This document shows positions 183 through 60,700 of a stretch of DNA of 64,000 nucleotides, piece by piece. The stretch comes from Dicyema japonicum. Taxonomy: Eukaryota; Animalia; Dicyemida. Under the pieces are notes generated by a model, which was not told where the DNA came from, searched no databases, and was given only the letters and a program-made list of their open reading frames with translations. Where the stretch lies: contig RDEW01000022.1 of assembly GCA_011109175.1 (NCBI GenBank), positions 814,624 through 878,623 of the forward strand, in the 5' to 3' direction. Made by a program: the position numbers and the translations under genes. Position 1 is the stretch's first letter, and each line of letters begins with the position of its first letter.

Positions 183-1414
183 ATGGAGATTAACGAAAAG
201 AACGTAGTTAATCTAATAAATAAATCATTGGAAAATCCTTTAATAAGTCGTTATTTTTCAGGTAAGTCTTGTGGATTCATTAGGCACTCATAAATTGCTT
301 GAATAAGTACAATCTAAAAGTAGACCTCGTAGGCACAGAAATCGACAAAAAAGTCAATACCTTGGACCCCAACAAAATCCTAAAAGCCCTCTTTGTCTGG
401 CATAGTATCATCATCAACTGCAGAAACAAAGTATTCCCCCTTTTATATTTGAGGATTTTCTAAACCGCTTCTATGCAAATAGAACTGCCAAGATTCGGCA
501 ACTCAGGTCCTCCTGTGAACTCATAGCCAATTCTTCTATCTGTGAGAACAGTGATGACCTTATTCTGCACTATTTGAAGTTTCTGGAACTCAGATCAAGC
601 CACGTTTATGAGGAAGTTGTTAACAATTTTATGACTATTCAGGTTCCCCCCATTTCATTAATTCAGGGGAAACTTGAAAAGATTACCACGATTGGAGAGA
701 TAATGACGTGTTTACTGGAATTGGTTGTTTTTCTGGTTAATCCAGATCAAATACTCGAATAGAGACTCATCACTCGCGACCATTGCACTCAAGGAACTGA
801 ACCAAGTTACCCACGTGTATTCCAGGGAGATTAAGCTCCTGCATAGTTGTGGTACGAACTAAGGTGTAGAAAATCTCGAGTCTGTCCCCAATTTGTCCCT
901 TAGACCAATTTTTTCGGCTATCCTCACATATGAAGAGCATGTGGTATCACTAAACCACCTCAGGGGTAGAAACACGCGGGTAGAATGTAGGCTGGAGTCC
1001 TGTTTCGCTGTATTTAGGGGGTAGTCAATCCTAGAACAAGGATGAGGTCAAGAGGACGGCTCAATTGGTCACCAAGAATGAGACTTTGCTGTTTGTTTGT
1101 GAATTTAGTAATTTAGACGCAACAGTTCTCTCCTTTTTAATCTGAGGACTTCGAATGGGCAAGTTCTGGTTGACCATCAACTTGGTTTGCTACGAAAGAT
1201 GGTATTTTTGTAGTTATTTTGTCAGACTCGAGGTTTTTCCAATACCGGTTGTGGTGTGTAATGACTCGTAGGTCCAACCTTATTCAGTTTGTCATTCTCA
1301 GAGCGATCTGTTGAATGTGGAGACCTTGATACTCTGTTTGGTTGTGGTTGGCAAATATTTGTAGGGACTATTAATGATGGGAGAAGAAATGATGATTTAA
1401 TCTATTTTGATTGA
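183..1414 (+). CDS. Multi-exon protein-coding gene, possibly an ANTH/ENTH-like (HIP1/PICALM-type) N-terminal domain protein
   Basis: ATG at 183 after an AT tract. The frame is kept by removing short GT-AG introns (e.g. 431-453, 23 nt; 643-666, 24 nt). Translation ...KILKALFVWHSIIINC...DDLILHYLKFLELRSSH... weakly resembles ANTH helices. Inferred TGA at 1412-1414. The family call is weak. Confidence 0.5.
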
Positions 1415-1789
1415 CTTATTAAAATAATATTGACATTAACTAGCTTTCTGTTCTTACCAACTTGTACGAGACCAGCAGTTATTAATAAACATGCTAATAC
1501 GAGGTAATTGTCTATGTGGCGACAATTGGATGTTAGTTTTACTCGAACAGCTAAGAATCACAAATATTCGTCTATCAATTGGTTCTAACATCAGGGAAGT
1601 AGCACTGGGTGATGGAGACTACTGAGCGAGCACAAAACTTGATTGGCTCCTTTTAATACTCACAGGGGATTCCGAACATAACCTCGGGTCTTATAAAAAC
1701 GGTATATTCCTGAACATAAACAAATCCACTGAATTATTGATTTTCAATGGCATTTTGAGTCAACACAGCGAGTGGAATAAACTGCATTT

Positions 1790-3436: not shown

Positions 3437-4024
3437 TTATATAATTAAATAACTTTCGGCGGTTAAAAATAAAATAATCATAACAGTTATGAGCAAACAG
3501 CCACCACCCAATGAGGCACCACCAGAACAACCAACAACGTTGTAGTACTTACTTTTCACGCGGTATTTATTTCCATAGACTCCGTAGATTTTGTGTTCCA
3601 GACGAGCAGGTCTAGCCCATGTGTTAGATTTATTGTATGAATAACTCTGATAATATTCTCCAGGCCTTGTCCACGTGTTCGGTCTACAGTATGGAGAATA
3701 TTCTCTGCGACGGACAAATTTTGAGGTTCCGTTACTCCTTCGATAAGGAGGGTGAACTGCTGAAAGATGTGAGTCGTACTCGTGCCTGGTCTCCTCGTAT
3801 ATGAGTGTGTCGTAGGCAGCTTTCAATTTAATGAATTTACCAGAGTCCGTTGAGAGCCCTGATTGAATATCTGGATGATAGAGCTTGCTCTTCCTTATGT
3901 AGGCCATTCTTATTTCCTCCTTTTTGGCGGATCTTTCCACCCCCAACACTTTATAATGACAACAAAATGTTCTTTCGATTGTTATTGAAAGTTGAATTAA
4001 ATTTTCAAAAATCATCAAACACAT
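3437..4024 (-). CDS. DnaJ/J-domain co-chaperone with C-terminal hydrophobic segment (type III J protein)
   Basis: Uninterrupted 195-aa ORF: HYKVLGV..A..EEIR.AY....K.YHPD...KF..L..AY..L (J-domain with HPD motif), and a hydrophobic tail. Confidence 0.9.
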   Translation of the reverse strand: MCLMIFENLIQLSITIERTFCCHYKVLGVERSAKKEEIRMAYIRKSKLYHPDIQSGLSTDSGKFIKLKAAYDTLIYEETRHEYDSHLSAVHPPYRRSNGTSKFVRRREYSPYCRPNTWTRPGEYYQSYSYNKSNTWARPARLEHKIYGVYGNKYRVKSKYYNVVGCSGGASLGGGCLLITVMIILFLTAESYLII

Positions 4025-4129
4025 AAACTTTTAATTTAAATTAAATATATAATTTTTTTAATTAAATATTAATTCATAATTCATATTTTAATAAGCCGCA
4101 TGGCGCCATGTTGTGCTTCGTGGCTAATT

Positions 4130-4890: not shown

Positions 4891-4894
4891 TATT

Positions 4895-7869: not shown

Positions 7870-8790
7870 CAATCAGTTATTATAATAGCCCTTTCAGTAT
7901 ATCTCCCAAGGCATTTTGTTATGTTATTCAATTAAGTCGTGTCCGACCCCTGGAGATCTCATGAACAAGTTTCCTCTACTCTCCCGATCCGTCGCAGTTT
8001 GGAGTAGCCTTTATATAGCATTCCCAAGACATTATAGTAACTAATCGTTGATAGAAGGGAATATTCTTTAACCTCTTTTTGTTGTGTGAGGCCTTGTTGA
8101 CGGTTAATGAGGTATTCACGGGGTCACTAGTCAATCCCAGTTTGTTATTTACATGGTTATTCCTTCTCTGGATTGCAAGGTAATACGCTCGAATAGTCTG
8201 CAGTATTTCGATAATGTTCTTTGAGTTGGCTGAAATAGATTTTGGGGGAATGTAGAATGAATTTCTGATGGCTCCAAAGGTTTCAAATAAAACTGAGAAG
8301 GTATTGAAACTCCCACACTTTTCTACTTTCTCAACGAGTGAACAGGCAGTTAGGGTTGAAGAAAGTTGTTCGAGAGAAAATGCACGTGACAAAACTGTCT
8401 TCCTGTAAGGTTTTATGCCCGAGAGCCCTGCCGGCACTTCTCCCGATGCTACCCGACCTATTTTCTACACAAACATACAGGGAAGAACACGTGGAGAATG
8501 TGAGAGTAACATTAAATACTGGAACACAATCACTCATAAATGTTATTCAAGTTTTTCCAATGCTAACCATCTTCATTAAAATCATCGTCGGAATCACTTA
8601 ACTAAGATTTGAACAAGAATTTTTTTGTATATTCGGCGATTCATGTTTCCTCCCCACACGTTAAAAGAAAAGAAGACGTTTCCATAATAAGGGATATACA
8701 GTTTCTAGGAGTAGATATAAAACTCGCCGTCTCCCTACTCTTCATTATCTTCAGAACGAGGGGCGAAGGGTCACATAAATCAAGAGGTGA
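7870..8790 (-). CDS. Uncharacterised multi-exon gene
   Basis: 153-aa open exon at 7976-8437, an upstream ATG near 8790, and plausible short GT-AG introns. No recognisable domain; boundaries approximate. Confidence 0.4.
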
Positions 8791-9149: not shown

Positions 9150-9600
9150 TCTATAATTCCATTCTTGCCGCGTTTGTATGATCCTCGATACTAGTCTCTC
9201 CCACTGTCTCCTATTTGATGCCAAACTCACCTTTCCTTAATGATCTGTTTACTGATCTCAAATCACCATTAAGGACTTCGGGAAGCGTTATACGCGGACG
9301 ACCTCTGAACTTTCCCCCAGATGTTTAAAAGAATTATTCCATGATGATGTTTGTTGGCGTATCTGGCTAGAATTAGAATTTGATCAAACAGTTTCCATTG
9401 CATCTTCATGACCAGGGTTCTCAGGGGTACAGAAGAGCATCTTTTGTAGAATGCTTTACTCCTCACACGCATTGGCCACTTTAGTCCCAAGAGAGAACGG
9501 AGTTGCTTTCTATGAGAGGAGTCGAGTCTTTCAAGATTAACCATATTCAAAGGTATACGTAAGGATCGATTTCACGCCACATACAACCTGAGCCAGAGTG
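9150..9600 (-). mobile_element. RTE-clade LINE C-terminal fragment
   Basis: ERLDSSHRKQLRSLLGLKWPMRV is typical of RTE ORF2 and matches 13226-13486. Confidence 0.75.
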
Positions 9601-9715
9601 ACGGGCAGGTTGAAGTGGTGACGTCCCTCTCTTGCATTTATGTCGAATACGTGTTTAAATGATTCTTATTGGTTTTCTACTCTCATCTTCAACACCAGGA
9701 GCCTTAATTATTATT

Positions 9716-11390
9716 ATTTTTATTTAACAACCCCGAAAAGGGAACACCGAAAAAGAAGGAGTAAACCAACTAATTAAGTGATCCCGGTACGCCTCAACAG
9801 AATCGAGAGGTTTTTCCTATGTTCCTCCAGAGAACTCACAGCTTTCCTGAATAGACGACGATCATCCTTCATTAGAGTTGAACACCGAAAAAGAAGGAGT
9901 AAACCAACTAATTAAGTGATCCCGGTACGCCTCAACAGAATCGAGAGGTTTTTCCTATGTTCCTCCAGAGAACTCACAGCTTTCCTGAATAGACGACGAT
10001 CATCCTTCATTAGAGTTTAAAAGAGGGGTGGGTTTTTTTTCCAAATTTCGTGTATTTGAGGCCTATAGCCTTTAATGGAAGAAACTACTTGTTTCTTGAC
10101 CACACAGACCGATGAAGCCTGAGCCATTATTTTTGAAGCGGCGTGGTCAAGCATTGGGGGAAAGATCGGGGGTAGATTCGTTAGACGTGCCAGTTTGCCA
10201 ATTAGGGAATTGATCTTGGTTGAATTTGATATCGAAGCTCCATAGTAGGCCCATGAGGCACAAGCATACTCTATCGTCGGTTTTATGAGTTGATTGAACA
10301 AGACGACAGCGCATTCCTATGACGGCCTGGACTTCAAGAGCGGTTTGATTATATTTAGTTTCCTGAGACCCTTTGTCATAACGTTCTTCACATGTTGAGA
10401 AAATGTCATCAAAGAGTCAAATGTCACTCCCAGGATAGTTGGACGAATCTGTAATGGTAAGGAGTCTCCATAAATGTTCAAATCCAATGTATGTTTTTCT
10501 TTTCTGTCCTTGGTGAAGATTGTATACGTTGATTTATCCCTGGATATGGAGAGACGATTCAACTTCAACCAGGCTCCCAGGTCGTCAATATGTGACTGAA
10601 GCTCTGATTTTGCTGTACCCACGTATTTGTTCCTGCTAGCGATGATTAGGTCGTCAGTATAAGTGAGAAGCATTGAATCTGGTCCTCCAGGGCAGGGTAA
10701 ATCGTTGAGGAATAAGTTGAATAACGCCGGAGAGAGGGGCGATCCTTGAGGGACGCCATTTGGTAGGAGACGGGACCTCGATCTTGCGTGGCCTATACAG
10801 ACACGTCCTCTTCTTCCGGAGAGAAAATTGGCTATCCATCTTTTCAAATCCGGCTGAATGGTGGTGTCAAAAACCTTTTTCGTGAGTAATGTTCTCGAGA
10901 CAGAATCAAACGCCTTATGGATATCCAGGGAAACCACTATTGTCCGTAGATGGCGTTTCAGTACGTTGAACCCTTTTGATATAAATCGAGACAGTGAAGT
11001 CAAATGTGTCGTAGTTGAACGCTCACATTTGAAACCATGTTGAAAGTGGCAGTCAGGCAAAAAGCGATAATGCGCACGTTAATGAAATTGGGAGATAGGA
11101 AGAAGGTAAGGTTTTCGGTTTTCCTGGTTTTAGGATTGGTATTATAAGTGAGTTCTTCCATTTGCATGAAATGATGTTCATGTTAGAAGACAAATTAAAA
11201 TTTGACGTAATCGAATTGATTGCAATTTTAGCAAAATTCCAGGAATGCCGTCAAAACCACACGTATAAGATTTCTTCATCGATCTTATAGCCTGTGTGAC
11301 CTCGGCATGCGTAAAAAAATTTAATGGTTCTTTTTGGTGTATTACTACACTGAGCGTCACCACAAAAGATGAACCACATGACGCCACGTT
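9716..11390 (-). mobile_element. I/Jockey-like LINE: RT and 3' end
   Basis: ORF 10317-11060 has LDIHKAFDSV, GVPQGSPLSPALFNLF, YTDD and LGVTFD. It ends ...RRTGIT* plus the conserved tail. The terminal 138 bp are duplicated. Confidence 0.9.
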
Positions 11391-11599: not shown

Positions 11600-13225
11600 C
11601 CGACAAATTAAATAACTACATAGCCGTCAGGAGATTCCCTTTTTTGGAGGGTAGTAAGGCTCCAGTTTTCCTCAATAATTTCCACAAAAGGTGTAGGGAT
11701 TAGAGGTTTCCAAGAAAACCTTTTCAAAGCCTTACTGGCCATTTTTTGGAAGGTATTGATTTTTCTATATTCCCGTTTGATAGGTTGGTTCCCCATCCAG
11801 CACACCCGTAAGTTAGAGACGGTTGAATTTACTGAACGTAGAGCGAGTCCAAATTTGAGTTGAAACACCCATTATATTGTCCATGGAGTGTTTTAACTAA
11901 ATTTAGCTTTCGTTGTGCCGAAGAGATGACGTTGTCGATGTGTTTGCTGAAGGTCAAGAGTGGGTCGTAAGTTACGCCCAGTATTTTGACCGAGTTGGTC
12001 GTGGGGATTGAGTTTCAATTTATGGTTACACATGGAGCGGAGTTTGTCAATCTTCTGTTTGTTGTGAAAATTGTTGTATAAGACTTTTCGGGACTCCTAT
12101 GTGGAATGTTCCTAACGAGCCAACAGTTCAGATCGTCCAATGAAGCTTGTATCCGGTAAAGAGCAGTATTAACGCACTGGCTTTTGACTGCGACGATTAT
12201 ATCATCCGCATATGTCAGAATCAGAGTATCGTCACTGGTAAGGGAGGACATATCATTTAAGAATAGGTTGAACAGGTGTGGTGACAGTGGAGATCCTTGA
12301 GGGACCCCATTTGAAAGGAACTTGGTCACTGATCTATTTTTTCTAGCAGTTACTTTTCCTCTTCTTCCATTTAGGAAATTTGCGATCCAGATTTTCAGGT
12401 TGTTTGGATTTTTGACGTAAAGATCTTCCTTATCGAAAGCTTTCTTGGGACAGTGTCGAAAGCTTTTTCTATATCGATGGACATAACAAAGACTTCTGAT
12501 GAAGTTTGCGCTTTAGTCCATCATTGATGGAATTTGTAAGGCATGTAAGATGCGTTTCTGTGGAGTGTCCTTCTCTGAATCCGTGTTGAAAAGGTGGATC
12601 AGGAAGGTATGGTTTGATTAGTTCAAGAATCAGCTTTTCCAAAAGTTTTGATGTAACACATAGGGGAGATATTGGTCTGTATGAGGACTGATGATCCCAT
12701 TGGTCGCCCGGGTTTCAGAATAGGTCGTATGTTTGATAGCTTCCATATGGAAAGAATACAATTTTCGTTGATTGAAAAGTTAAAAATTTTTGTGAGGGCC
12801 ATGATAGCATAGGGGCCTAGGTTTTTCAGAACTATTGCAGAGATTCCGTCCGGACCACAGGAATAAGTCGACTTTAGACCCTTGACCATATTCTGTANGG
12901 GCCATGATAGCATAGGGGCCTAGGTTTTTCAGAACTATTGCAGAGATTCCGTCCGGATCATATGAATAAGTCGACTTTAGACCTTTGACCATATTCTGTA
13001 CGTTCTCCACAAAGAGAACAATTGGGGATGTGGCTCTTTTATGTTTGAGAGCTAGGATGGATGGACCTTCGAATTTCTTGTGTGGGATGAAACTCGTGGA
13101 GGAGTAGTACTTCATAAGTTTGTTTAGGAAGATCTTGTTTTCCATTTCATCACGTGTGGCCGGGTTGTCAGCGTCACTAAAGCTTCTAAGTGTTTTCCAC
13201 ATTTTTGTAAGGGAGTTCTGCTTGC
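11600..13225 (-). mobile_element. I/Jockey-like LINE ORF2 (degenerate)
   Basis: GPDGISAIVLKNL, WKLSNIRPILKPG and GVPQGSPLSPHLFNLF..YADD. Confidence 0.85.
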
Positions 13226-14345
13226 TTAAATTAGACATGAGGTTTTCCAAACTTTCTCTTGTTTCATTTTTAATACATGCTCAAATAGCCTCCACCGGGA
13301 ATCTACCACATCCTTGCTGATGTACGAACACATACACTTGTTGTAGATACCAGTAGTTGATATTCTACGTGGCCACTCCATTCCGAGTAAGCTTCTTAGT
13401 TGCCTTCTATGGAACGAATCCAGTTTCAATAGTTCGTTGAAGGAACTTCCCCATGTCCCAGCGTTGTACAGTAGTATCGGTTTCACAAACGCGTTGTAAA
13501 GCCTGCATCTGATGTCAATACCAAGTTTTTTGGCTCTTAGTCATCCTTTCCTCAGTTTAGCCATTGCCGCACTTGTCAGTGTTTTCCTCCTTAGTACATT
13601 TTCAGCTTCTCCTAGTAGAGAGCCGAGCTTATTAGTACATCTCCATCTTTCATGTCTATGTCTCCTATATAGCATTTACGGAGGCTGCGGAGTGCAGATT
13701 CAGAGTATATGGTGAATAGTAAAGGAGAGAAGGAATCACCCTGGAGTGTCCCAATCGTTGTTTTGAAAATGCGGGAAGTTGCTCCTCACAGATAGTTTTG
13801 TGTTCGCAAGTAGTAGTCTGATTATCCTAACCGACAATTCATCCAATATTTGCTCAAGCACATTCATCAGTTTCTGTCTGTTTATTGAGTCAAAAACTCT
13901 GGAGAGATCTATTCTCAACACGCTCGTTGTGCTCTTGAATCTTTGGTGAGTTGCACAACGCCATCTATGGCTCCATACAATGTCTGCCATAGACTTCCTT
14001 TCTCGGAACCCACTTTGACTTGCTGGTAGGTCAAAGTCGGCCACACCCTTTATCCGGCTTAGTGCAATGTTTACCAGCACCTTGCTTATCGAGTTCAGAA
14101 GTATGATCGGACGGAGATTTTATACTGGTCCTTTTTCTTTGTTCGGTTTTTGTATGAGGATTAATAATCCATTTCCAAGTCCTAGATCGGTATTAGTTTC
14201 AAAGATGGCATTTAGGGTTTTTGCAATTGTGTCGTTAAGTTTTTTGGCCCATATTTTAAGAGCTCAGGGCTTATGTTGTCTGGCCCAGCACTCTTGTTGT
14301 TCTTGAGTTTATTTAGCGCTAATTCCACTTCTTCCACTGTGATTT
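13226..14345 (-). mobile_element. RTE-clade LINE RT region
   Basis: KLKNNKSAGPDNI, LPASQSGFR, IDLSRVFDSINR and KLDSFHRRQLRSLLGMEWP. Confidence 0.85.
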
Positions 14346-14349
14346 TTTT

Positions 14350-15365
14350 ACCCCAAGATCTCCGGATTAGAAAAAGTTAAAAGTTAACTACTAACTAAGT
14401 GATCCCGGTTTTCCGGGTTCTGGCTCTCGTTCGTGGTCCTCGAAGATCCAACAGAATTGGTAGAAACGGAGACGGTCTTATTCACCATAGATTCCCCGCA
14501 TTTTCTAGATAGTCAGATATAGAGAGTGAAAGCGGACACCCGGTTTTCATTGCCCACTGTAGAAATGACTTCACTCTCCACCTTAGATGTTCTTTAACAT
14601 TCAATACGTTATTCACAGTTTTCTTATTAATTATTTTCAAGGCAGCAAGTTGTGCGGCTTCTAATTTTTGAGACGACGATTCAGAAATCATCGAGCTCCA
14701 GGAAGGACATGTGTATTCGATTACTGGCAGTATGTATTGTCTGTAAATTTTCTGTAGTAAGAAGGTGTTGCGCCCGATTGGTGATCGGGACAAAATTTTC
14801 AATATGTTGGCCCCCCTGACCTTGGTAATAACGTCATTGACGTGTTGGCCGAATGTCAGGAGAGTATCCAACTTTAATCCTAGTATTGTTGGAGACTTAT
14901 TCATAGGAATTTCATATCCAAACAATTTGATTTTAGGAGAGTATAATGATCTTCTATATGTAGAGAAAATTGTTATAAACGACTTTCCTGTAGAAACTCC
15001 CAGTCGATTTGAAATGAGCCAATGTTCCAACATGCCATTATAACTTTGAAGTTTCATCCCTTCTTACTCATAGTTAGAGTCTCTCGTCGCATGAGAGTAT
15101 CAATGTATCGGGATCGTCATTGATGGGAAGGTCATTGGTGTACAGGTTGAAGAGCAGGGGAGAGAGGTGAACCTTGAGGGACACCATTCGGCAATAAACG
15201 GGATTTAGATTTTCTGTTGTCTGACATCACTTGTCTTCTTCTTTCATTTAAAAAGTTCGACAGCCATCTTTTAATGTTTGGATTTATAAGAGTGTCAGAA
15301 ATTTTCTCTATAAGCAGCGTCCTGGACACGGAGTCGAATGCTTTCTTCAAGTCTATTGAAGTCAT
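14350..15365 (-). mobile_element. I/Jockey-like LINE 3' half (ends RKTGIT*)
   Basis: IDLKKAFDSV, GVPQGSPLSP and ILGLKLDTLLTF. GGG ATC ACT TAG at 14395-14406, then the conserved tail. Confidence 0.85.
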
Positions 15366-15374
15366 TATGGTCCT

Positions 15375-15690
15375 NTCCGAGATATACGACTATACAATGT
15401 GTGATGAATAGCAAATCCAAGTCCATAGTGACGACACGTTGTTGGAAGAATAATCAAATGATAATTTCCCACCCGCATGCATGTGTTGTCAGTTATTTTT
15501 GTTTCCTGTAGGCAGCATACTGTAACATTATAGTGATCCAAATCACGTGACAGCTGAAGCTTCTTGTATGTTGGATTGAGTCTTCTTACATTCAGGGTAC
15601 CCACAGAAAAAAGGCAGTTAGATATTAGACGTGAGAAAGACATATGTGCTATAGAGGCACGTCACCACCTCAACCAATAAGAAGTTTGGC
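15375..15690 (-). mobile_element. RTE-clade LINE 5' end / APE endonuclease start
   Basis: VGTLNVRRL...VCCLQETK...HYGLGFAI (APE motifs). Confidence 0.75.
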
Positions 15691-15699
15691 TTCCGAATT

Positions 15700-21680: not shown

Positions 21681-21735
21681 ACCTATCACATAACAAATAA
21701 TAGTAAAAGCAAATAATATATTATTCTGCAAACAA

Positions 21736-22591: not shown

Positions 22592-22617
22592 ATACGTAAT
22601 ATATTATTTAAATATTT

Positions 22618-41820: not shown

Positions 41821-41962
41821 NNNNNNNNNNNNNNNNNNNNNNNNNNNNNNNNNNNNNNNNNNNNNNNNNNNNNNNNNNNNNNNNNNNNNNNNNNNNNNNN
41901 NNNNNNNNNNNNNNNNNNNNNNNNNNNNNNNNNNNNNNNNNNNNNNNNNNNNNNNNNNNNNN

Positions 41963-42140
41963 TGCAGCGTGGATTGCGAACGAGTTCTCTCGGAGTATGG
42001 CTATTACAATTTTTGTCTTAGCCATAACCCTTCTCGTTGATCCCTTTTCTTTCTGGCAAGCAATCCTCCGAGTTCTCACAAGAACTCAGCCGTCATTGGA
42101 CCAACGGCTCCCGATGGTTCAGTCGCAACAGGAGTAAATC
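41963..42140 (-). mobile_element. CRE 3' fragment
   Basis: KIVIAILRENSFAIHAA is near-identical to KIGIAILRGNSFAIHAA at 45.3 kb. Confidence 0.75.
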
Positions 42141-42199
42141 GGTAGCGATCCCCGAGGCAAGAATATTTCTTGTTTATAATAAATTAAAACCAAATATGC

Positions 42200-46637: not shown

Positions 46638-48010
46638 TTATAATTCATCCACCCCCACTATTTTACGACTATGCGCCCTGCAAACATCCAAGTCACACAC
46701 CTACGACATATCCACATACAAACCTTATCCTCCAAAGACCCTCGAAGTCCATTCAAAGTGAGACCAGTCACCTTCTTAAATAACCACTCTTCAGCCTCAG
46801 CCACATCTCCAGCTACAACATCATGCCCACGTGACACAAAAAACTAAATAAAACTCGATTACTACAGAAACAATGTTCTTGACATCTCCTAACAGAAACT
46901 GAAGAGCACACGGATGCGAGGTCAGCACAGCCTGAGCCACGTCGACCACCCAAACGTGTCCTTTATAGTACAACAGATTGAAGGCACTCAAGTCCGCGTG
47001 GACCAACTGACATTCTTTGAACAGCCTCTCCATAATATAGACAGTATCCTGGAAGGCAGAATCAAGCTGTTGACCGGTTAGGATAATATTCTGAAGAGTG
47101 GGCGCGCTTGTGAAGTCAGACCCGATAAGGGACATCACCAACACGTGTTTTTTGAGGTAGATTGGTCTAGGACAACATAATCCGCACTCAAATATTCTAA
47201 AATTAATAAAAATCCACTTTTTCAGATTAATGAACTCTTTGAAAGCCCAAAGGTTGATGAATTTGACGGTTTTTTTGACATTTATTTTACTGGAATAAAT
47301 GGAGGTGATACCACTTTAGGCGGGGGTCGAATTTTAGAAAGATTTCTCTGCCCTTGTAAATATTGAATGAGGACGACAAGTATATTTTAAGGGCCAAATT
47401 CGAGCCAGGGGGAGAAAGAGCGTGAAATATCGAGGCCTCCTTCCCACTGGAGAAACAGTTGAACACCCCACCCAAAATTCCCTCCTCCTCCAGTTTGAAT
47501 AATACCATATTTGTATTTTTGTTCAATACACGGTTCTAATACATTGTAAAACTCAAAAAGTAGAAAAAAGTAAATTTAACAACTTCAAGGCAAATTTCGA
47601 CCCTAATAAAATAGTTGGGCACACTACACAAAAGCACGTGTTTAAAATAAAAATAAGCCATGATATAATCTTACAGAGGTATGGTTTTCATTTTTGTCCT
47701 TTGAAGGTCTTTTAGTACGATTTACGGGAATTTTGAGCTGATATAAGCAAAACTACAACCAAGTATTCTTGTTTGACAAAGTAATCATCATCATCAGTTA
47801 CGTCATAATCTTCGATAAATCTATTACGTAATACCGGTTCGACAGCAGGTAGAAATCCTTTTGTCTAATATTATGCTAGTTTCGTTGTTGAATTCTTCCT
47901 GTAACATCATTGCCAGTTGAAAATCACTGCTTGTATCGAGTTCCTCACTGAATATTAGCCTTTATTGGTACTCGGAGTAAAACGATAAATTTGAATTTCC
48001 CTCTTTGGGA
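46638..48010 (-). CDS. RIOK3: RIO-family atypical Ser/Thr kinase, RIOK3-like
   Basis: SSDFQLAMMLQEEF (RIOK3-like N-terminal motif), SSGKEASIFHA, ALKIY, LKKHVLVMSLIG, LVHADLSAFNLLY and VVDVAQAV. TAA at 46638-46640; start approximate. Confidence 0.85.
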
Positions 48011-48119
48011 TTTATCATGAAAACTATCCCACAAGGATCGTTACAACGATTTCTTTTGAATTTATTTATATTTATTTAATAATTATTTAATAAATTATTT
48101 TTTTCATAACGAAAATCTT

Positions 48120-48299: not shown

Positions 48300-48720
48300 T
48301 GCTGGTAATGTCTCAAAAACACTGTGGAAGAAAGAATTTCAGCTTAATGCTTTTAATGTTAGAACATTCAGTTCTGAAATACGAAAAAACCAGCTTTGCC
48401 AATATCCACATCATTACGGAATGGCTATGTATGTCTTTATGAAACTGAGCTATCCGTCGAATTGGATGGAGACTGTGGGAAATAGATTTCTGTTTCTGTG
48501 ACCGGACTGTAGGTACTATGGAATGGGCTTTGTGGTGCATTAGAGCATTAAAAAAGTATTGGAAATCAATGACAGGATTTTTATAATCCAGATTATCAAT
48601 AAATTATCAACAATAGTAAATTCTCCTACCATGGCCATAACTGCTAAAAATCAAAAAAAATTGACCTATTCTACACTGTTTTCGACTTTCCATTTACATT
48701 CCTTTCACATGTTCCAATCG
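48300..48720 (+). mobile_element. Degenerate RTE APE endonuclease fragment
   Basis: Remnants of AFNVRT..., YGMGFVVH and NDRIFI motifs, homologous to 15375-15643. Confidence 0.5.
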
Positions 48721-49545: not shown

Positions 49546-49649
49546 GCTTGATGGGATTTTATTTAATTTATTTTATTATAAATAATATATAATTAAATTA
49601 TCAAATAGAAATATATTATTTGAAGTAGAACAAAAAAATTATTGACGTC

Positions 49650-51135
49650 ATGCTTGAAGGAATTCCTAAAGATCAGGTCTTAGCTCCAGATTTAATTTCA
49701 GGTTTTTTTGGTGATAACTCTCCTCACATTTATCCCAGTTGGACTGCTGTTTAGGATATTATTTTTTTACAAAATCAAAAATACCGGACTGAGGCACTAC
49801 CTCACTACAGTTATGGGGTTAATCGTCCTCTTCATTTTCTACGGAAGGTCTAATTTTTGGATAATCAAGGAGTTGCATGCACATGCTGGCTCAGTCTCTC
49901 ATCGTCTACTTCATCCTCTGGGTCTTCCCAAGGCGGTCCCGAACCTTGTGGGCAATCTCGGTCTCCTTCGCTTACTTGTTAATCCTTCACATCTGGCGAG
50001 CCTGGAAGGATTACGGGGGTTATAAGCTCGACATTACAGGGTTTGACGGTTTCCTCCATAATAGTCCAATAATGATCTCCACCCAAAAGCTCACTGCTCT
50101 CGCCGTGGCCTACAAAGATGGCCTAAAAACAAACAATGACGAGAAGAGTGAAAAATATTCTATAAAGTTACCCCTAGCTTAACGGCTAGGAAACTCCCTT
50201 CCCTATTAGAATTTTCCTCGTACATCCTCAACTACCATGGAGTGCTGATTGGACCATTCTTTCACTTTAAAGATTACATCGATTTTGTTGGGAACGAAAA
50301 AGTTTATTTTGTATATATTTTTAGAGACCAAAATATTATTTCAAAAATATTTTAATTAAATTATTTTATTCTATTTGTTGTTCCTTGTTGGTTGTCTACT
50401 TTGGGGGATACGTAGACCCCGAATGGATTTATAGTGACGATCCATTTATATTCTAGAAAAGTCTAGAAAGATCGACACATTTTCGGCTTTGATTGCTTTT
50501 CACTTTTATGCCTATTTGAGTAGTGTTAGTACTCGCTTCAGATATTATTTTGCGTGGATTATGTGTACTTTATGTGGTTTATTAAGCTGAACTGGCACAT
50601 AATGCTGTGGGATTCGGGTATAAAGAAGAGTCAGAGTCCTGGAGTGGGATGAATAACGTCTGCGTCCTCAAATTCGAGGTCGGGTCTTGAGTTATGACAG
50701 TTTCCTAGATCCTTCAAAGAGGCCGTGGCTAACTGGAATATAATGACCGTGGAGTGGCTCCGGTATATCGTGTACGAACGGGATCTTCCCTTCAAGAAGC
50801 TTTGCCTTTTCCTGGTCTCTGCTTTCTGGCACGGTGTCTATCCTGGGTACTACATTATGTTTGGTACTGCCTTCATTTTGACTCAGACAGCAATTAAGGT
50901 AGTATTTGGAATGATTTTGATTTATAAATTTACTGTTAGGAGGAATCTGTCCCCGTTGGCTGCCGGTATCCTTCAGAGGACATTTGGGATGATGGGGATC
51001 ACATATATGTACCTGCCGTTCGTGGTTTTGTCGTTTTATAGGAGTGTGCAAATCTACTGGTTTCTATGTCGCTTATTTTAGGTCGATTGGCTTTTGGTTG
51101 CATTTTCTGGCAGTTTCTATTATTTTAATGTGTTG
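49650..51135 (+). CDS. MBOAT2: Membrane-bound O-acyltransferase, MBOAT1/2 (lysophospholipid acyltransferase)
   Basis: DYGGYKLDITG/PIMISTQKLT, PSLLEFSSY...GPFF and NWNIMTVEWLRYIVYER...VSAFWHGVYPGYY (catalytic His motif). Tiny introns; 3' end approximate; MBOAT1 versus MBOAT2 not resolvable. Confidence 0.88.
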
Positions 51136-52492
51136 ATTTTTTGGTGTTTGGTTGATTATGTGCTGGTTATCTTAGGTTAGCAACGTATTCTATGATCATT
51201 TAGCCACGTGATGTAAGTATCATCGATTGATATAAATTTAATTATTGGTGAGAGACACATTTGGTGGTCTAAATTTTATTTATGCTCCATTTTTGGAAGT
51301 TAACTTTCAATTTTTCTGAGCAATGAACTGTCGCACGTGGTCATGAATGTAAATTTCGGCAAATTTGTCATTTACGTTTCATTATATTTTTCTGATTTTC
51401 GACGTCTTTTAGATGGGGCAATTCTAAAAAATACCAACAACAAAAATAGGAATTCGCTTTCAGTCGACTCTTACTGACCGTGGCTTCCAAATTTACTGAT
51501 GAATATACCGTTGAATTGACGATAGTCTAAAAACAACTTTGTTTATAATAAGTATTTTTCGACTATTCCGACTGACCATGTTGAACGTTGTAAAGTTAAG
51601 TACTCGGATGTCGCTTAAGTTTGATCGTAATTACGCTCAAAATCTCCGGAGCGGTTGAAATAACTGGTGAGTAATCAATGAAATTGGGACTAAATCGTAG
51701 GAAGGAGTATCAAAGATGTTCTTAATTTCTTTCTTTTGGATTATGTGCAAGTTTTTAGAGACAATCCAGTTGCCTAGTGAGATATCACAGATGACGGCTT
51801 GTCAAACCAGAAAGCATCATATATGCCTAGAACTTTGAACGGAATGGAAGTAGTAAGATTCAATTATGTCGAGCAGTGTACCACCTATGTTTATCCTTAC
51901 ATAATAATGTTGGATTACTGCTTTCTTTTATACTATAGCTAATATTCCATANNNNNNNNNNNNNNNNNNNNNNNNNNNNNNNNNNNNNNNNNNNNNNNNN
52001 NNNNNNNNNNNNNNNNNNNNNNNNNNNNNNNNNNNNNNNNNNNNNNNNNNNNNNNNNNNNNNNNNNNNNNNNNNNNNNNNNNNNNNNNNNNNNNNNNNNN
52101 NNNNNNNNNNNNNNNNNNNNNNNNNNNNNNNNNNNNNNNNNNNNNNNNNNNNNNNNNNNNNNNNNNNNNNNNNNNNNNNNNNNNNNNNNNNNNNNNNNNN
52201 NNNNNNNNNNNNNNNNNNNNNNNNNNNNNNNNNNNNNNNNNNNNNNNNNNNNNNNNNNNNNNNNNNNNNNNNNNNNNNNNNNACCTATGTTTATCCTTAC
52301 ATAATAATGTTGGATTACTGCTTTCTTTTATACTATAGCTAATATTCCATAACCTCTTTTTGAAGTAGAAATAAAAAATTCCAGCTTCTTGAGTAAACGA
52401 TTTCCCGCTTATTCGACCAGCTGTCTCAAAAACATAAATAAATGGCAAAAATCACCATTTAAAAACAAAAGTTAATATATTTACAGAATTCA

Positions 52493-55459
52493 CTAATTGA
52501 GGAATTTTCGACAATTATGAGCCCCACAGAAACAGGGAATCTTGTCCCCTTCTTCCGCACTGAACTTATAGTCGTAGGTAACTTCCTCCCCTCTATGAAT
52601 GTCCCTCTTGGAATAAATGCAAACCTTCTTGTTCCCATCGACCTCCACAACACGTGCACTGCAGTTAGGCTAAGATAATAAAAACAAACAACATTGCAGC
52701 TATGGTTGATAAATCTCGCGAAATTTCCCTCCATAGTCGCATCAATACACCAGAAATCGTCCACTTTGAACAAATACGAGGAATCCACACCACGTGCCAA
52801 ATATCTCTGCTCTCTGACCTCAGCCACACTCATTCGAATGTAACTCCCGACATATTCAATCACTAAATCATCTGCAGGGATGTGTTCATCAGCAAACAAC
52901 CCCCAACTGTGAATTCCACTCCTCCGAAACTTTAGCTGTTTCTTACGAAACTACAAAAATGATTTCCCAAACAAACATTCAGATTGTTGAATTTGAGTTT
53001 TTCCGACACCATGTCCCCACGTGCTGCGAAATAATTGCTCATTCGCTTGTGATCCGAGATGGTAGTCCTCACTGCCTGTGAATCAACCATTTCGTAGCCT
53101 CCCAATCTACTCCCCATCGACTAGATTATTCACAAATCCAACCTTCACAGTATTAACCGTCTTCTGAGACGACCACGTGTCCTTCTGGGCCTTGGACACC
53201 TTTTTCATGGTCTCAATGTCAAGGGTCCGACTACATTCCCCGATGGGTATCTGACTCGACCGCCTCGAAGTCCTCAACTTTTCATTATTCCATAGTTTAG
53301 TGGGGCAATGGTACTCCCAATGGGAATTAAAGACCCACGTGGGGGACTCTTCAGAAGACAACAACTGCTCATAGGCGATCTTCAAATATCTGGTGTCAAT
53401 TATACAAATACCCGATGTCCTCTTGAGAGATCCCCTTAGTGAGGTATTCAGTCACTATGTTCTCATCAGCAGCCTTAGAACGCTTCCTGAAAACACTTCG
53501 ACGTCTTGAGGACTCCTTGATCTCCGATGGGGATAAAAGTGGTTTAACAGTTTTGGCTGATTTAGCATCCACAAAAGGGAGGGCTTCATGTTTCTTATTA
53601 TTGATTTCACGAGGTTCAGAAGAGGAAGATATCATTAAGGGACCATCCTCTGTGGAAGGAACACGTGGGAAATACTCGGGAGATGACATGGGTTCCTTAA
53701 TTTTGATTTTGAGGTCTTCATAGTTTTCCGCCACATCATTTACATTGGATTTCACGGAATTTTCAGAAAAATCCACGAATAAATCGGCCAAATCAACAAC
53801 CACCAATTCACGAATTTCAGATGTCTCCTTTTCACCCTCATGCATCAACTCGGGTATCTTGAACTCTTCGTCAACCTCCTCAATCTTATGTTTTGGTGTC
53901 TCAGGCTTCTCCATGACCAAATTTTCCTTTCCAGAAACAGGATTTTTCTTCCGACTTTCAACTGACGATAGTCTCTGACTACTTCGACGCTTTCTGTCCG
54001 TTCTGGAACGACTCCTATCTCTTCTACGTTTCCTCTTTCGGTCTCTTCTTTCCTCCATCATCTTTTCAGTCTACAATAATATCTCCAGGACACCTTCCGT
54101 TCAAACCACGCGTCAATTCTAGGAAGGACAGTCTCCTTCAGCAGAATATTGGTGATATCTCTTCGTAGCGACGTCTTCAACTCATCCATCACCTTCTCGG
54201 TCACATTCTTCCTAAGACGGTCCTCACTTCGAAATTACTACACAAATACTCGATCTCTTTGACATCCTCGGAGGTATTCATTGACAACCCAAACCGTTTT
54301 ATCACAAAACAGATCTTTTTGCGGCCCCCTTCACCTTCGGGGATCTCATCACATTTATCGAGCCCTTTTTCAGCATAGTCTTTGTCAGATAACTCAAGTG
54401 AACAATTATTCCTCTCATATTTCGATGGTTCCGGACTTTCCCTTATCGAGCCCTTTTTCAGCATAGTCTTTGTCAGATAACTCAAGTGAACAATTATTCC
54501 TCTCATATTTCGATGGTTCCGGACTTTCCCTTAGAGACATGTGCCTCTTTCCACCATCAGCTGAACTTTTCCGACGGGAACTGTTTCGTTTACGGCTTCT
54601 TCTGTGCACTTCCCTTCTCCGGTTCCTTCTTCTGCTAGATTCCCTCTCAGAACTCCTCTTGTGGTCCCTTCGATCTTTTTCACCATGTTCCCTGACAATA
54701 TCTTCGGTTTTGTGGGAACCCGATCTTCCACAGACCTCTTCTGATCTTTCCTCTCCCTTATTGGGTAGACTTTGGTCATCAGTTTCAGAGACCATGTGGT
54801 TTGGCTGGTTTATAATATCCTTAATAATTTTAGCACGCTTCCTTCCTGAAGAATTAAAATACTCCTAACCAAAGGTATCTGGAACCACAGAGACAACGTT
54901 CCCCATCTTGGGTTTGTTGTGTAGACCCTCCACACATCTACCCACGGACTCACAGTCTTTGAAGATGATCTGCATTAGGCCAATGGGCACCTTTCCTACA
55001 CCCAGATGCTGCTTGGTGGTGGGATTCTCATAGATCTTGGCGATCTCGACCTCTCCAAAGGGGGAACATATATCTTTGAGGAACTTGAGGTCACAGTTAT
55101 TGTTCAGATTGCTCAGAGTCACTTCACGACACGGAACTGAGGCTATTTCACGTTTGAGGATAGAGTCTATCACCAGCTTCTGTTTCGTAAGAAAAATAAC
55201 AAACTCTAAATTTTGGGTGTTGAAAGTTCTTCGGGGGATGTATTTCCACCCATGCAGGCTTATTCTTGGTTCGGGGGTCCTCCACTAGTACAGGATAGGC
55301 CTGGGAATTCGACTGGGCTTATAACTCAAGCAATACTCCTTGAACGACTCCCTCCACCCTGAAGACCTTGTGAAGTCCCTGCTTCAAGGCGGGATCTACA
55401 ATGAGCTTGTAGCTCCTCCTTCGTTTAGCAGGAAAAATCTCAGTTGATCGATGATTCAT
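52493..55459 (-). CDS. SETD1: Histone H3K4 methyltransferase SET1 (RRM, N-SET, SET, post-SET)
   Basis: [23 protein letters not shown]...[48 protein letters not shown] and C.CG...CRKFLN* (TAG at 52493-52495). Confidence 0.95.
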
Positions 55460-56300: not shown

Positions 56301-57719
56301 CCGTGGATATAGCTATTTTCTATGAGACAAATTTAATCCATTCCCACTTTTCCTGGATATTTGTTTTCCGACGGGACAGAAAATATGGAAGGGGTGGAAG
56401 CCTTTCATAATATTCAGGAAAACGTCTTTGTTAATGAGATCTCTGATAACACATCAGCTCTCTTCCCATCTGATAAACCCTTCGAACAACTCTGGAACAA
56501 GGGGATCTCTCATATCAGACAACATTGACGACTTGATTATCCTTAATAATCCAGGTAAACACTTAGGTACTCCCCTACCTTTTCTTACTGCTTATTCCCT
56601 TTTATCCCTTGGGGTATTATTATAGACTTAAGTACCTACCATAACCAATCATGCTGAGAATTTCACAAAAATGGGAGTTAATTCCTGCAACATTGACTAC
56701 TAGCAACTGCTCACCAAAGTCTGGCCCGTCTTCGGATCCTTTCTGAACAACACTAATAGAGGATTTCTCTTCAATCGCCACTGTTGTGTCTCTTAATGTA
56801 ATAATTTAATTCATTTCTATGGGTTGAGTCCAACACACTTCGCATCTCCTTGCATAGAATCACGGACACTCATACGATGGAGAAACAAACTAAAGGACTT
56901 TGACATACAGTCAACTACCATGAGTGAAACCTGTTCAGAGTCAAATAAAGATAACTACCTTAACATTGGGAGACAAAAAAAAAAAAGATTGGTAGACGTA
57001 CTGACAAAATTCACAAACAAACATGTCTTTCACAACTCTAAAAAGGCTCAAAAAGTCTTATCTATGAAAATGAAGTCTCCTAAGCATCCCTTGAGCCGTT
57101 AGTCCGATCATTTCAAGATTCTCCTCAAGATATAGAAACCTTTTTTATGTAGATTAATCCATGATTCGAAGACAAACCTTATGAGAATGCTAAGTATTTG
57201 TCTCCATCTATTTACAAAAGTTTTATATACGAGTCTCTAACATGACTGCTACATAAAAATAGCCATTTTGTCCTGAATCACCGTTTTCATTAGCTCTATC
57301 AAGTAGTTTTCAACAGTCCTGAAGTCAATATTAATCTTTATCTTCAACACAATTCATTAAGCTTTAACGAAAGCTTGATGCCTGCTCTTCTTGTCTTTTT
57401 TTACCTNATTCGAAAACAAACCGTATGAGAATGCTAAGTATCCGTCTCCATCTATTTACAAAAGTTTTATATACGAGTCTCTAACATGACTGCTACATAA
57501 AATGAGCTATTTTGTCCTGAATCACCGTTTTCATTAGCTCTATCAAGTAGTTTTCTACAGTCCTGAAGTCATCATTAATCTCTATTTTTAACACAATTCA
57601 TCTAGCTTTAACACAAGCTTGATGCCTGCTCTTCTTGTCTTTTTTTACCTGCCCTTAAAGTTTTAAAAATTATCATTAATGTGTAAATATGTTTTTTTTA
57701 ATTTTATTATTATTATTGT

Positions 57720-60700
57720 GTCCGGTTGACAACGACTCCAGGTTGAGAACGATCCGTTATATCGATTTAACCGTTAAAGCCGTTTAACCGTATGACCGAG
57801 AGTAACGATTACCGTTTGAGACGGTTAAATACGACCCATCAGCTTTTCTCGTCATCGAGGAAGTGCTACAGATGAGTCATTCTCTTTGGATAACAAGACG
57901 ACGTATAATACAGAACCTGCTAAACCTGCGAATGATCCTAGAAAACACGACCAAACGGAAGTGTCTAATTCTACGGACGAACCAATGAAAGCTGATCCTA
58001 TAGACAACATGACTCTATTACTCACAGTTCATTCTAATATGAGTGCGACAAAATTTGCGAATGTTCTACAATATTATGACCAATACGGATCTTTGAGGAT
58101 GAGCCACAAAGGACCGGGCTCGTTCCAACTAGATTTCCAGGACAGTTCTCACATGGCCATTTATATGGAGGCCATAAATGAGACCTGTCCTTTTGGAACT
58201 GACAACCACCAATTTAGAACACTCCTAACAAGACCGTGTGAGATTGTCCTTAAGAACTTCCCTTTCTGGGTGAGTGAGGACGACCTCTTGGATTACCTTC
58301 AAGAGATGGCTCCCTCAACTTTGAAGGTAACCCGAATGTCAAGAGGATTGCAGTCTATCCCAATGGCGAAGGCCTCGGTTAGTAGTAATTCGTAGGCCAC
58401 ATCGCTGATACGTTGTGGCTTCTACATTGGATAAAACAAGATCACGTGTTAGTGGATGAGAAGACCCCCTCCTATCTGCTACAATTGCGAACGAATTGGT
58501 CATATCGCCGCACATTGCAAGGAGAAGAAGAGGTGCCTCAAGTGTGGAGGGGAACACGACCTTGTTGTGTGTGAATTTTCNCTATGCCAATGCCGAAGGC
58601 CTCGGTTAGTAGTAATTCGGAGGCCAAATCGCTGATACGTTGTGGCTTCTACATTGGATCGAACAAGATCCCGTTGAGTGGATGAATAGGCCTCCTTTTA
58701 TCTGCTACAATTGCGAACGAATTGGTCATATCGCCGCACATTGCAAGGTGCTTCAAGTGTGGAGGGGAACACGACCTTGTGTGTGAATTTTCTCCAAACG
58801 TGGAGACAAATTGTATTAATTGTGGAGGACCAGGACATAATCTCCGTTACAGAACATGTTCTGCTATGAAAGAGGCATCCAAAAAATTGATTCCCATACA
58901 GACAGTCTAGAAAGGAGACTATCAAGCCAACACAAGAGATGAATTGGACCAATATATCACATATTCAGGATGGGCCGGTGGAGCGGAGTGCTACAAAAAA
59001 ACTTAAGCAGAGCAAGCCAGAAGTTTCCGAGACGGTATCTCGAGAGCTAAGTGAAATAATCGCTCGTCTGAACAACCTATGTACACTGCTGAAAGTGGAT
59101 TTACGGAATTTGGTGGATCTGGGTGTGGAAAGCGCAGGCCACCAACAAAATCTATGAAAAATTATTTAAAAATAGTGCTGGTGAATGCCCGCTCCTTGGT
59201 GAAAAGGCATGGTGAACTAGCGCTACTTGCGAGGAATGCTTAGGTTGATGTCTTAGTAGTCAACGAGACAAAACTTAAACACGGAAAATATTATATTATG
59301 GAAGGATATGACTAGGTAGACATCCAGTGGAAAGATGGAGCATTGGCTGGGACTTCGATCTTTTTCCGTAAAGAATTGCAAACACGGAACGACTCTTATA
59401 TTGACCGCCGATTTGGAATTCGTGTCCGTCGATGTAAAATGCGGAATGACATGGATAAACGTGGGAGGACTATACTCTAAGGACTTGGCCCGATCTTCTG
59501 CGAAAATTGTTGANNNNNNNNNNNNNNNNNNNNNNNNNNNNNNNNNNNNNNNNNNNNNNNNNNNNNNNNNNNNNNNNNNNNNNNNNNNNNNNNNNNNNNN
59601 NNNNNNNNNNNNNNNNNNNNNNNNNNNNNNNNNNNNNNNNNNNNNNNNNNNNNNNNNNNNNNNNNNNNNNNNNNNNNNNNNNNNNNNNNNNNNNNNNNNN
59701 NNNNNNNNNNNNNNNNNNNNNNNNNNNNNNNNNNNNNNNNNNNNNNNNNNNNNNNNNNNNNNNNNNNNNNNNNNNNNNNNNNNNNNNNNNNNNNNNNNNN
59801 NNNNNNNNNNNNNNNNNNNNNNNNNNNNNNNNNNNNNNNNNNNNNNNNNNNNNNNNNNNNNNNNNNNNNNNNNNNNNNNNNNNNNNNNNNNNNNNNNNNN
59901 NNNNNNNNNNNNNNNNNNNNNNNNNNNNNNNNNNNNNNNNNNNNNNNNNNNNNNNNNNNNNNNNNNNNNNNNNNNNNNNNNNNNNNNNNNNNNNNNNNNN
60001 NNNNNNNNNNNNNNNNNNNNNNNNNNNNNNNNNNNNNNNNNNNNNNNNNNNNNNNNNNNNNNNNNNNNNNNNNNNNNNNNNNNNNNNNNNNNNNNNNNNN
60101 NNNNNNNNNNNNNNNNNNNNNNNNNNNNNNNNNNNNNNNNNNNNNNNNNNNNNNNNNNNNNNNNNNNNNNNNNNNNNNNNNNNNNNNNNNNNNNNNNNNN
60201 NNNNNNNNNNNNNNNNNNNNNNNNNNNNNNNNNNNNNNNNNNNNNNNNNNNNNNNNNNNNNNNNNNNNNNNNNNNNNNNNNNNNNNNNNNNNNNNNNNNN
60301 NNNNNNNNNNNNNNNNNNNNNNNNNNNNNNNNNNNNNNNNNNNNNNNNNNNNNNNNNNNNNNNNNNNNNNNNNNNNNNNNNGTCTGAACAACCTATGTAC
60401 ACTGCTGAAAGTGGATTTACGGAATTTGGTGGACCTGGCTGTGGAAAGCGCAGGCCACCAGCAGAAACTTAAAAATATTTAAAATAGTACTGGTAAATGC
60501 CCGCTCCTTAGTGAATAGGCATTGTGAACTAGGGCTACTTGCGAGGAATGCCAAGGTTGATGTACTGGTATTCAACGAGACGAAAATTATCACGGAAGGT
60601 ATTATAGTATGGAAGGATATGACTCGGTGGACATCTCGTGGAAAGATGGAGCAGTGGCTGGGACTGTGACTTCGATCTTTTTCCGTAAAAAATTGCAAAC

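Follow-up and report, generated by a model that had tools for sequence, protein, structure and literature searches.

Why should one six-base palindrome crowd the genes of a dicyemid? The question is raised by a 64,000-nucleotide stretch of the Dicyema japonicum genome (assembly GCA_011109175.1, contig RDEW01000022.1, positions 814,624 to 878,623), hereafter the window, in which an original prediction made by eye had counted 37 copies of CACGTG. A string search of the window recovered exactly the same 37 start coordinates. The window has a G+C content of 38.5%, rather than the 36% or so first estimated, an observed-to-expected ratio (O/E) of 0.79 for CpG and 1498 Ns. The six to seven copies then thought to be expected are nonetheless near the mean of 5.54 from 100 dinucleotide-preserving shuffles of the window (standard deviation 2.2, maximum 12). 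When all hexamers were pooled with their reverse complements, CACGTG was the strongest outlier under Markov backgrounds of orders 1, 2 and 3, with O/E values of 6.5, 4.3 and 3.4 and z scores of 13.2, 9.6 and 7.9, respectively. Its O/E was only 1.7 at order 4, because the pentamers CACGT and ACGTG mostly derive from CACGTG and absorb the signal. No other hexamer palindrome or word of the E-box form CANNTG in the window showed comparable enrichment, and CAGCTG (9 copies) and GACGTC (11 copies), whose counts are much as first estimated, were close to expectation. The flanks were unrelated for 35 of the 37 sites, the exceptions at 48217 and 56254 belonging to two copies of a single retroelement tail; since the contexts are unique, the excess is not a repeat family. 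These controls confirmed that the excess of CACGTG in the window is real and not an artefact.

The excess was examined at the codon level in a strict set of homology-backed exons (4812 nt, about 43% G+C), with reading frames of long interspersed nuclear elements (LINEs; 6951 nt, 42% G+C) as the control. The exons contained 12 copies of the word (2.49/kb), against a dinucleotide expectation of 0.62. The excess survived the check suggested with the original prediction, a shuffle of synonymous codons that kept both amino acids and codon usage; this gave 1.64 ± 1.15 copies, and none of 3000 shuffles reached 12. The LINE frames held 2 copies (0.29/kb) against 0.74 expected, a rate different from that of the host exons (p = 0.0014). 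Peptides permit the word where they read His-Val, [S/P/T/A]-Arg-[V/A/D/E/G] or x-Thr-[Trp/Cys]. Twelve of the 15 permissive contexts in the strict exons spell CACGTG, with phases 0, 1 and 2 represented 5, 3 and 4 times, so that the word is independent of frame. The other three contexts are each one letter off (CACATG, CACGTT and CTCGTG). Codon usage would place 1.7 of the 15 at distance 0 from the word and 7.5 at a distance of two or more. In the LINE frames, 2 of 14 permissive contexts were occupied and the distances were spread from 0 to 3. A wider and less certain exon set had 16 of 22 contexts occupied versus 2.33 expected (phases 6, 5 and 5). The 18 one-letter neighbors of the word were depleted in the host exons (15 versus 24.6; about 2% of shuffles fell this low) and not in the LINEs (17 versus 17.5), and 59% of ACGT tetramers lay inside CACGTG in host exons versus 9% in LINEs. 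It is thus shown that, where synonymous choice would allow CACGTG in native genes, a pressure acting on the DNA spells it in about 80% of cases; in LINE frames of equal composition the share is far lower.

We considered whether the contrast between genes and transposable elements (TEs) might arise from decay of methylated CpG, and rejected this explanation. The CpG O/E was 0.70 in exons, 0.80 in LINE open reading frames (ORFs) and 0.80 in the rest of the window, and there was no excess of TpG/CpA. As these ratios are similar, differential CpG decay does not explain the contrast. An artefact of composition, codon usage, repeats or assembly could appeal to the order-4 Markov ratio and to duplicated joins in the assembly. 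It is refuted by the controls and is hardly credible, since the dinucleotide, Markov order 1 to 3 and synonymous-codon controls all fall short of the count, the contexts are unique, no site is duplicated by a join, and several sites stand in frame on residues conserved in orthologues.

The distribution of the sites along the window was examined next to genes accepted on Pfam, PDB or orthologue support. A spliced-ORF dynamic programme, which returned too many spurious low-score paths, was used only as supporting evidence, for SETD1 and a Myb-domain gene. Six gene spans were so supported, covering 11.5 kb and containing 21 of the 37 sites (1.82/kb), and the remaining 51 kb contained 16 (0.31/kb; binomial p = 2e-7 for the concentration in gene spans). 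The concentration in host genes that had been claimed is therefore present, whereas exclusion from transposons is not absolute, as six sites are TE-borne. The earlier figure of about 29 of 37 sites in or next to host genes was roughly right: there are 21 in the six genes, five in or near two ORF-bearing loci and two within 600 bp of a gene, with six in retroelement-derived DNA. DNA outside the genes is itself enriched (16 sites versus 4.4 expected, 3.6-fold, Poisson p = 1.5e-5). To describe the word as occurring only in host genes would therefore be an overstatement.

The symmetry of the signal bears on the level at which it acts. The outer bases of the word are cooperative, as CACGTG occurs 37 times versus 21.9 predicted from the margins of the NACGTN table (contingency p = 8e-5). 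A flank preference was found only at position −1, where C occupies 28 of 74 half-sites pooled by two-fold symmetry (p = 0.001). In host exons read on the sense strand, G at +1 (8 of 16) mirrors C at −1 (7 of 16). Frame independence combined with two-fold symmetric sense-strand flanks indicates that the signal acts on DNA and not on protein. Likewise, the palindrome, the mirror-symmetric flanks and the lack of a phase preference argue against a signal at the level of RNA or translation. An RNA-level exon signal was weighed in this light. In such a scheme, CACGUG in the pre-mRNA would help to define exons in a genome with introns of 22–27 nt and splice signals reduced to GTa...AG, and retroelements would lack it because they are without introns. 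The reduction of splice signals in D. japonicum (PMC13644364), the presence of mini-introns of 23 and 22 nt in the window, and the richness of the word in spliced host genes relative to LINE ORFs are all consistent with this. There would be no reason, however, for an RNA signal to be a perfect palindrome (64 of the 4096 hexamers) or to have mirror-symmetric flanks on the sense strand, and sites are also found in non-genic and TE DNA. We consider this explanation quite unlikely.

Because the outer bases are needed together and the sole flank preference is mirror-symmetric, we infer that the word may be read on double-stranded DNA by a two-fold symmetric, that is dimeric, protein. The putative reader is most likely an E-box protein of the basic helix-loop-helix (bHLH) or bHLH leucine zipper (bHLH-ZIP) type, the alternative being a CACGTG-specific modification enzyme. 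CACGTG is the canonical class B E-box. The preference for C at −1 and G at +1 presumably resembles the flank of Myc/Max-type sites, which we take as a lead rather than a test. Among the transcription-factor domains listed for D. japonicum, helix-loop-helix (HLH) genes number 14, second only to homeobox genes (16) in a very reduced repertoire (Table S5, PMC6736024).

Ordinary E-box regulation, in which clustered bHLH sites would control neighboring genes, is thus provided with both a class B core and HLH genes. The likeness to the sites of bHLH-ZIP dimers such as Myc/Max, USF, TFE and Mlx extends to the identical core and to two-fold symmetric recognition. In contrast to the known sites, which are sparse and lie in promoters or enhancers, CACGTG here saturates coding exons at about 2.5/kb. 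Position largely refutes this explanation, as most placed sites are inside coding exons, including 12 in homology-supported exons, and the only two promoter-looking sites are retroelement tails; the original prediction had likewise put the sites mostly in exons rather than promoters. In addition, an occupancy of 80% of the contexts is far beyond any regulatory need, and orthologous loci of other animals lack the excess. In the SETD1 neighborhoods of Trichoplax, Nematostella and the ostracod Cyprideis (55 kb in total), 8 copies of CACGTG were found versus 6.8 expected, and the word was not the top palindrome at the SETD1 loci of these three animals. Regulation of this ordinary kind is therefore very improbable as the cause.

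The sites that lie in retroelements were examined individually. LINE-derived DNA, defined by ORFs with RVT_1 and endonuclease domains and by their relatives, covers at least 9272-11288, 11802-16297, 24180-25718, 34944-35434 and 60561-62072, and fragments of LINE endonuclease also occur at 19070-19291 and 48337-48540. Six of the 37 sites are retroelement-borne (13151, 15544, 19094, 48217, 56254 and 58443). Those at 13151 and 15544 lie in the decayed minus-strand LINE at 11802-16297, recognized by Pfam RVT_1 and Exo_endo_phos matches and by a map of protein self-similarity. The site at 19094, upstream of the gene DAP3, falls in the endonuclease fragment 19070-19291, which was detected by tblastn with a LINE endonuclease ORF (E = 2e-14). 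The site at 58443 precedes a CCHC zinc knuckle of a LINE ORF1 by about 55 bp, with endonuclease and reverse transcriptase ORFs downstream at 60561-62072; in an alignment, the sister copy at 58582-58792 reads CCCGT-TG where 58443 has CACGTG. The interval 58355-58792 as a whole consists of two adjoining copies of a LINE ORF1 segment that are 87-93% identical and flank a single N at 58581. Indels of 11 bp and 3 bp separate them, a difference too large for a mere overlap artefact.

A comparison of nine flanks placed the remaining two sites, 48217 and 56254, in two copies of one subfamily of retroelement 3' tails, the former adjoining the endonuclease fragment 48337-48540. The idea that these two sites represent a shared promoter element was rejected on this ground. 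Members of the tail family, which reads GGGATCACTTAAT TAGTT...GGTCTTGGGGTTAAATAAATAAAA with an A-rich end, occur at 8892, 9773, 9911, 14394, 35765, 43933, 48212, 49181 and 56249. The subfamily (48212 and 56249) carries CACGTGAT where the family has CACTTAAT. Five copies have GGGATCACTTAAT, the subfamily has GGGATCACGTGAT, and the copy at 8892 has CACATGAT, which is the product expected of CpG deamination of the CACGTG word.

Could the word be accumulating throughout the genome without any function? A neutral drive, in which repair, gene conversion or a methylation-coupled process turns near-cognate hexamers into CACGTG, would bring genes and old unique DNA to equilibrium, and retroelement copies would be too recent to have followed. 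Such a drive predicts both near-saturation of the synonymous opportunities and depletion of all one-off neighbors. It would account for the 16 sites outside the six gene spans where 4.4 are expected, and for the LINE contexts, which are shifted slightly toward the word (8 of 14 at distance 0-1 versus 4.8 expected). A limited time for its action in retroelements is plausible, as the LINE ORFs are broken only every 130 codons or so and family copies differ by 10-27%. On the other hand, the loss of CATGTG/CACATG that a process of the Vsr type would cause was not seen: these T:G neighbors number 34 versus 24.7 expected in the window and 3 versus 4.1 in host exons. Part of the non-genic excess probably represents unrecognized genes, given the five sites at two ORF-bearing loci, and two of the six TE-borne sites, being a trait shared by one subfamily, were not gained independently. 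We also know of no hexamer-specific drive in any eukaryote. A neutral drive is possible, and it has to be taken seriously, but we do not think it probable.

We tentatively favor, at somewhat short of an even chance, a pressure targeted to native transcription units, in which CACGTG would be a dense tag of gene bodies, maintained either by selection or by a process coupled to chromatin or transcription. Under this proposal, CACGTG would be a two-fold symmetric recognition word at the DNA level that has come close to filling the synonymous positions available in native genes. A small advantage would attach to each site within a native transcription unit, and its scaled value may be estimated at about 3.4 per site (ln 31, from observed odds of 12:3 versus 1.7:13.3 by codon usage). 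The word would then act as a dense tag that separates native genes from the retroelements making up half of the genome, and it might be used for keeping genes active or for selecting DNA during the reported somatic rearrangements. That the animal uses a six-base palindrome as a genome-wide tag of native genes, read by a dimeric DNA-binding or DNA-modifying protein and possibly serving activity or retention and amplification in somatic nuclei, is a more specific proposition and a rather doubtful one.

Several points weigh against a pressure aimed at genes. Given the 3.6-fold excess in non-genic DNA and the six TE-borne sites, the pressure may not be confined to genes. Youth could by itself explain the scarcity of the word in the LINE copies, and a process specific to genes and a slow drive at work everywhere, with TEs still young, are not told apart by the contrast between genes and TEs alone. 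Near-saturation exceeds what regulation by transcription factors normally needs. Since dicyemid populations are probably small, weak selection at each of thousands of sites would be hard to sustain. The reader or writer of CACGTG is putative only, and the sample consists of one 64-kb window with 15 permissive contexts.

Three possible mechanisms had been put forward in the original prediction: a site-specific methylase or repair bias, protection from mutation, and a retention or amplification tag. The last is a special case of the gene-targeted proposal, whereby the word would mark out DNA with genes, so that it is retained, selectively amplified or formed into circles during somatic chromatin elimination. 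Chromatin elimination, extrachromosomal circles and selective amplification have been reported for Dicyema (Noto 2003 and Awata 2006, as cited in PMC6543705), and the enrichment in native genes relative to retroelements would suit such a role. However, nothing in the window ties the sites to breakpoints or junctions, and the Dicyema assembly, which was made from whole animals, still consists of 49% repeats (PMC6736024). We regard this special case as unlikely.

Among the known systems closest to the word are the highly iterated palindromes of cyanobacteria, HIP1 (GCGATCGC) and others (PMC5861425; PMC4390886). The analogy with HIP1 drawn in the original prediction holds at this statistical level: in both cases a short palindrome occurs far above codon-shuffled expectation and independently of frame in coding DNA, largely through synonymous choice, and its function is debated. 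Unlike HIP1, CACGTG is found in an animal nuclear genome, is a hexamer with a central CpG and is much scarcer in mobile elements than it is in native genes. Cognate methyltransferases define the model for these palindromes, and the likeness of CACGTG to them rests on sequence statistics. By position, the one-off deviants of CACGTG in host exons, which are small counts, were 4 versus 9.6 expected at the outer, 5 versus 5.2 at the second and 6 versus 9.8 at the central position. For HIP1, Elhai reportedly found in 2015 that deviants by one nucleotide are biased to outer positions.

Other systems share some of these features. Chi and the uptake sequences of Neisseria and Haemophilus are also over-represented in native relative to mobile DNA and tolerated in genes; those words are asymmetric, often orientation-biased and read by dedicated machinery (RecBCD and ComP, respectively), whereas CACGTG is palindromic and has a putative reader only. 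Very-short-patch repair by Dcm/Vsr in Escherichia coli, which leaves an excess of CCWGG and a deficit of CTWGG, demonstrates that a repair bias can raise a palindrome genome-wide, genes included, but the corresponding deficit of T:G neighbors (CATGTG/CACATG) is not seen here. An animal precedent for noncoding content that marks native as opposed to foreign or silenced DNA is provided by the periodic A/T clusters (PATCs) of germline genes in Caenorhabditis elegans. PATCs are intronic runs of A/T with a 10-bp period, however, and CACGTG is a discrete palindrome written into codons.

Literature searches returned no report of an equivalent in animals, in agreement with what had been supposed at first, and the literature on iterated palindromes that was found is cyanobacterial only. 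No paper was found that joins CACGTG with dicyemids, and the main text of two dicyemid genomics papers mentions neither the word nor methylation nor bHLH factors. For D. japonicum, PacBio RS II subreads amount to 6.8 Gb (Table S1, PMC6736024), and data for two more Dicyema species have been described (PMC6543705).

An occupancy of about 80% of the places that the code permits in native genes points to a DNA-level force that overrides codon choice, and none has been described for animals. Such a force would act throughout the gene set of the animal. If the tag is true, it would be a new eukaryotic way to tell own genes from transposons and would offer a way into the chromatin elimination and amplification of dicyemids, which await explanation. 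If the drive is true, it would introduce to animals a kind of bias, in repair or conversion, that is specific to a hexamer and new to them, and the unsolved problem of HIP1 would gain a eukaryotic counterpart.

The six genes and their sites are as follows in order along the window. A DnaJ gene (3440-4030, minus strand; Pfam DnaJ, 2e-17) contains the site at 3672 within its ORF as AAC ACG TGG in phase 2, and the site at 3372 adjoins it, 65 nt beyond the stop of the ORF. DAP3/mS29 (about 19447-20863, plus strand) was identified by alignment with PDB entries for mS29 (E = 6e-9). Its sites at 19895 and 19937 read CAC GTG for His-Val in the P-loop exon, that at 19803 reads CCA CGT GCA in phase 1, and a fourth lies in the gene at 20153. 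The Myb-domain gene (about 26509-29203, minus strand; Pfam Myb_DNA-binding, 2e-13; spliced-ORF path score 1341) has two His-Val sites, 28690 and 28801, in its Myb exon and two further sites, 27338 and 26805, in downstream ORFs. Another site, 26031, is about 480 bp past its modeled end. A RIO kinase similar to RIOK3 and RIOK1 (46661-48075, minus strand; Pfam RIO1, 2e-34; PDB RIOK3, 4e-31 with alignment) carries CAC GTG for His-Val at the conserved KKH[VI]LVMS (site 47142), with other sites at 46828, at the end of the ORF, and at 47635, in an upstream ORF.

The MBOAT gene (49629-51474, plus strand; Pfam MBOAT, 2e-12) has sites at 51205 and 51334, just downstream of the ORF with the MBOAT domain (50698-51078). 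The apparent stop of this ORF falls inside a T-rich 22-nt GT..AG mini-intron at 51060-51081 (plus strand), which is predicted only; an initial reading of the two sites as lying in the 3' untranslated region was withdrawn for this reason. SETD1 (52284-55424, minus strand) was identified by the Pfam RRM and SET domains, a post-SET region, orthologue alignment and the exon frames given by tblastn. Its six sites, spanning 52651-53667, are all in exons, in phases 1, 1, 1, 2, 2 and 1. The site at 52651 reads GCA CGT GTT (Ala-Arg-Val, with Ala-Lys-Ile/Val in orthologues), and that at 52791 reads GCA CGT GGT, which encodes two variable residues and a conserved Gly. A T-rich 23-nt GT..AG intron at 52670-52692 (minus strand) splits the junction between SET and post-SET and is fixed by the orthologue alignment. 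Introns this short are known in animals only from myxobolids and D. japonicum (PMC13644364). The window also agrees with the published D. japonicum assembly in G+C content, in its abundance of LINEs and in the structure of its gaps (PMC6736024). The SET exon's best relative in the database (P0001, 74%) was considered as a sister species and rejected, as it comes from a contig with 53% GC of an unrelated organism.

At the protein level, DAP3 has His-Val at one position as in human mS29, and has His-Val elsewhere where the human protein has His-Ile in the alignment. The RIO kinase reads KKHVLVMS, where RIOK3 has His-Ile and RIOK1 has His-Val. In the post-SET region of SETD1, the NCYAK[I/V] of orthologues is replaced by NCSARV, with CGT as the Arg codon. 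These conservative changes complete CACGTG, but no substitutions are commoner in general than I>V and K>R. Compatible peptide contexts numbered 15 in the strict set versus 14.0 expected from a shuffle of residues. The notion that the motif overwrites proteins is therefore without statistical support, the I>V and K>R(CGT) cases being anecdotal, and the lack of an excess of compatible peptides indicates that the word is written at the synonymous level in the window.

Ten sites are neither in gene spans nor retroelement-borne, five of these lying in or close to two loci with ORFs. Two sites (8383 and 8488) belong to the locus at 7979-8598 and three (38082, 38873 and 39035) are in or near that at 38492-39424, as placed by the ORF map. 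No Pfam family was found for either locus, and atlas recognition was low. Atlas searches of 7979-8464, 38965-39417 and 22121-22603 returned no identification, and the first two of these frames were left out of the strict exon set for this reason. Isolated sites occur at 812, near the start of the window, 32117 and 44770, and one at 18857 is upstream of DAP3. The third frame searched, 22121-22603 (minus strand; path 21475-22603), is long and open, with protein-like features in the atlas, no Pfam family and no CACGTG. It gives weak hints of ubiquitin-like and CLU_N domains; if it is a native gene, it would be an exception to the crowding of CACGTG.

The continuity of the assembly was examined at its gaps. 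Three of the four N-runs (17200-17343, 51952-52282 and 59514-60381) have the same sequence, directly duplicated, on either side. The first is flanked by 17063-17196 and 17344-17477 (98.5% identical), the second by 51883-51951 and 52283-52351 (100%) and the third by 59066-59513 and 60382-60811 (84%). No such duplicate flanks the fourth N-run, 41821-41962. Nine of the 13 single Ns are likewise duplicate-flanked (5145, 6196, 11475, 18587, 28313, 37159, 43007, 57407 and 58581), as exemplified within the Myb gene by 27960-28312 and 28314-28666 (98.3%). The duplicates at joins measure 70-450 bp and are 84-100% identical. Judged from these duplicates, the joins look like unmerged contig overlaps or haplotype ends, in which case there is probably no true gap, or a negative one, and gene models would be disrupted by the duplicated stretches. 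Every CACGTG site is more than 300 bp from the nearest N-run, and the joins duplicate none of them. The count is therefore uninflated and independent of continuity across the gaps.

Three minor observations concern the window at large. The spacing of the CACGTG sites showed no significant regularity, with the rate estimated from the window itself. The next most over-represented hexamer that is not AT-rich and does not overlap CACGTG is GGAGAC/GTCTCC, with 56 copies versus 22 expected under Markov order 1 and 32 under order 3; the copies are scattered in unique contexts and form no repeat. Lastly, an inverted duplicate of 214 bp with 95% identity joins 41963-42175 and 45147-45360. Its first arm begins at the end of the N-run 41821-41962, and its second arm is inside an ORF of 133 amino acids.

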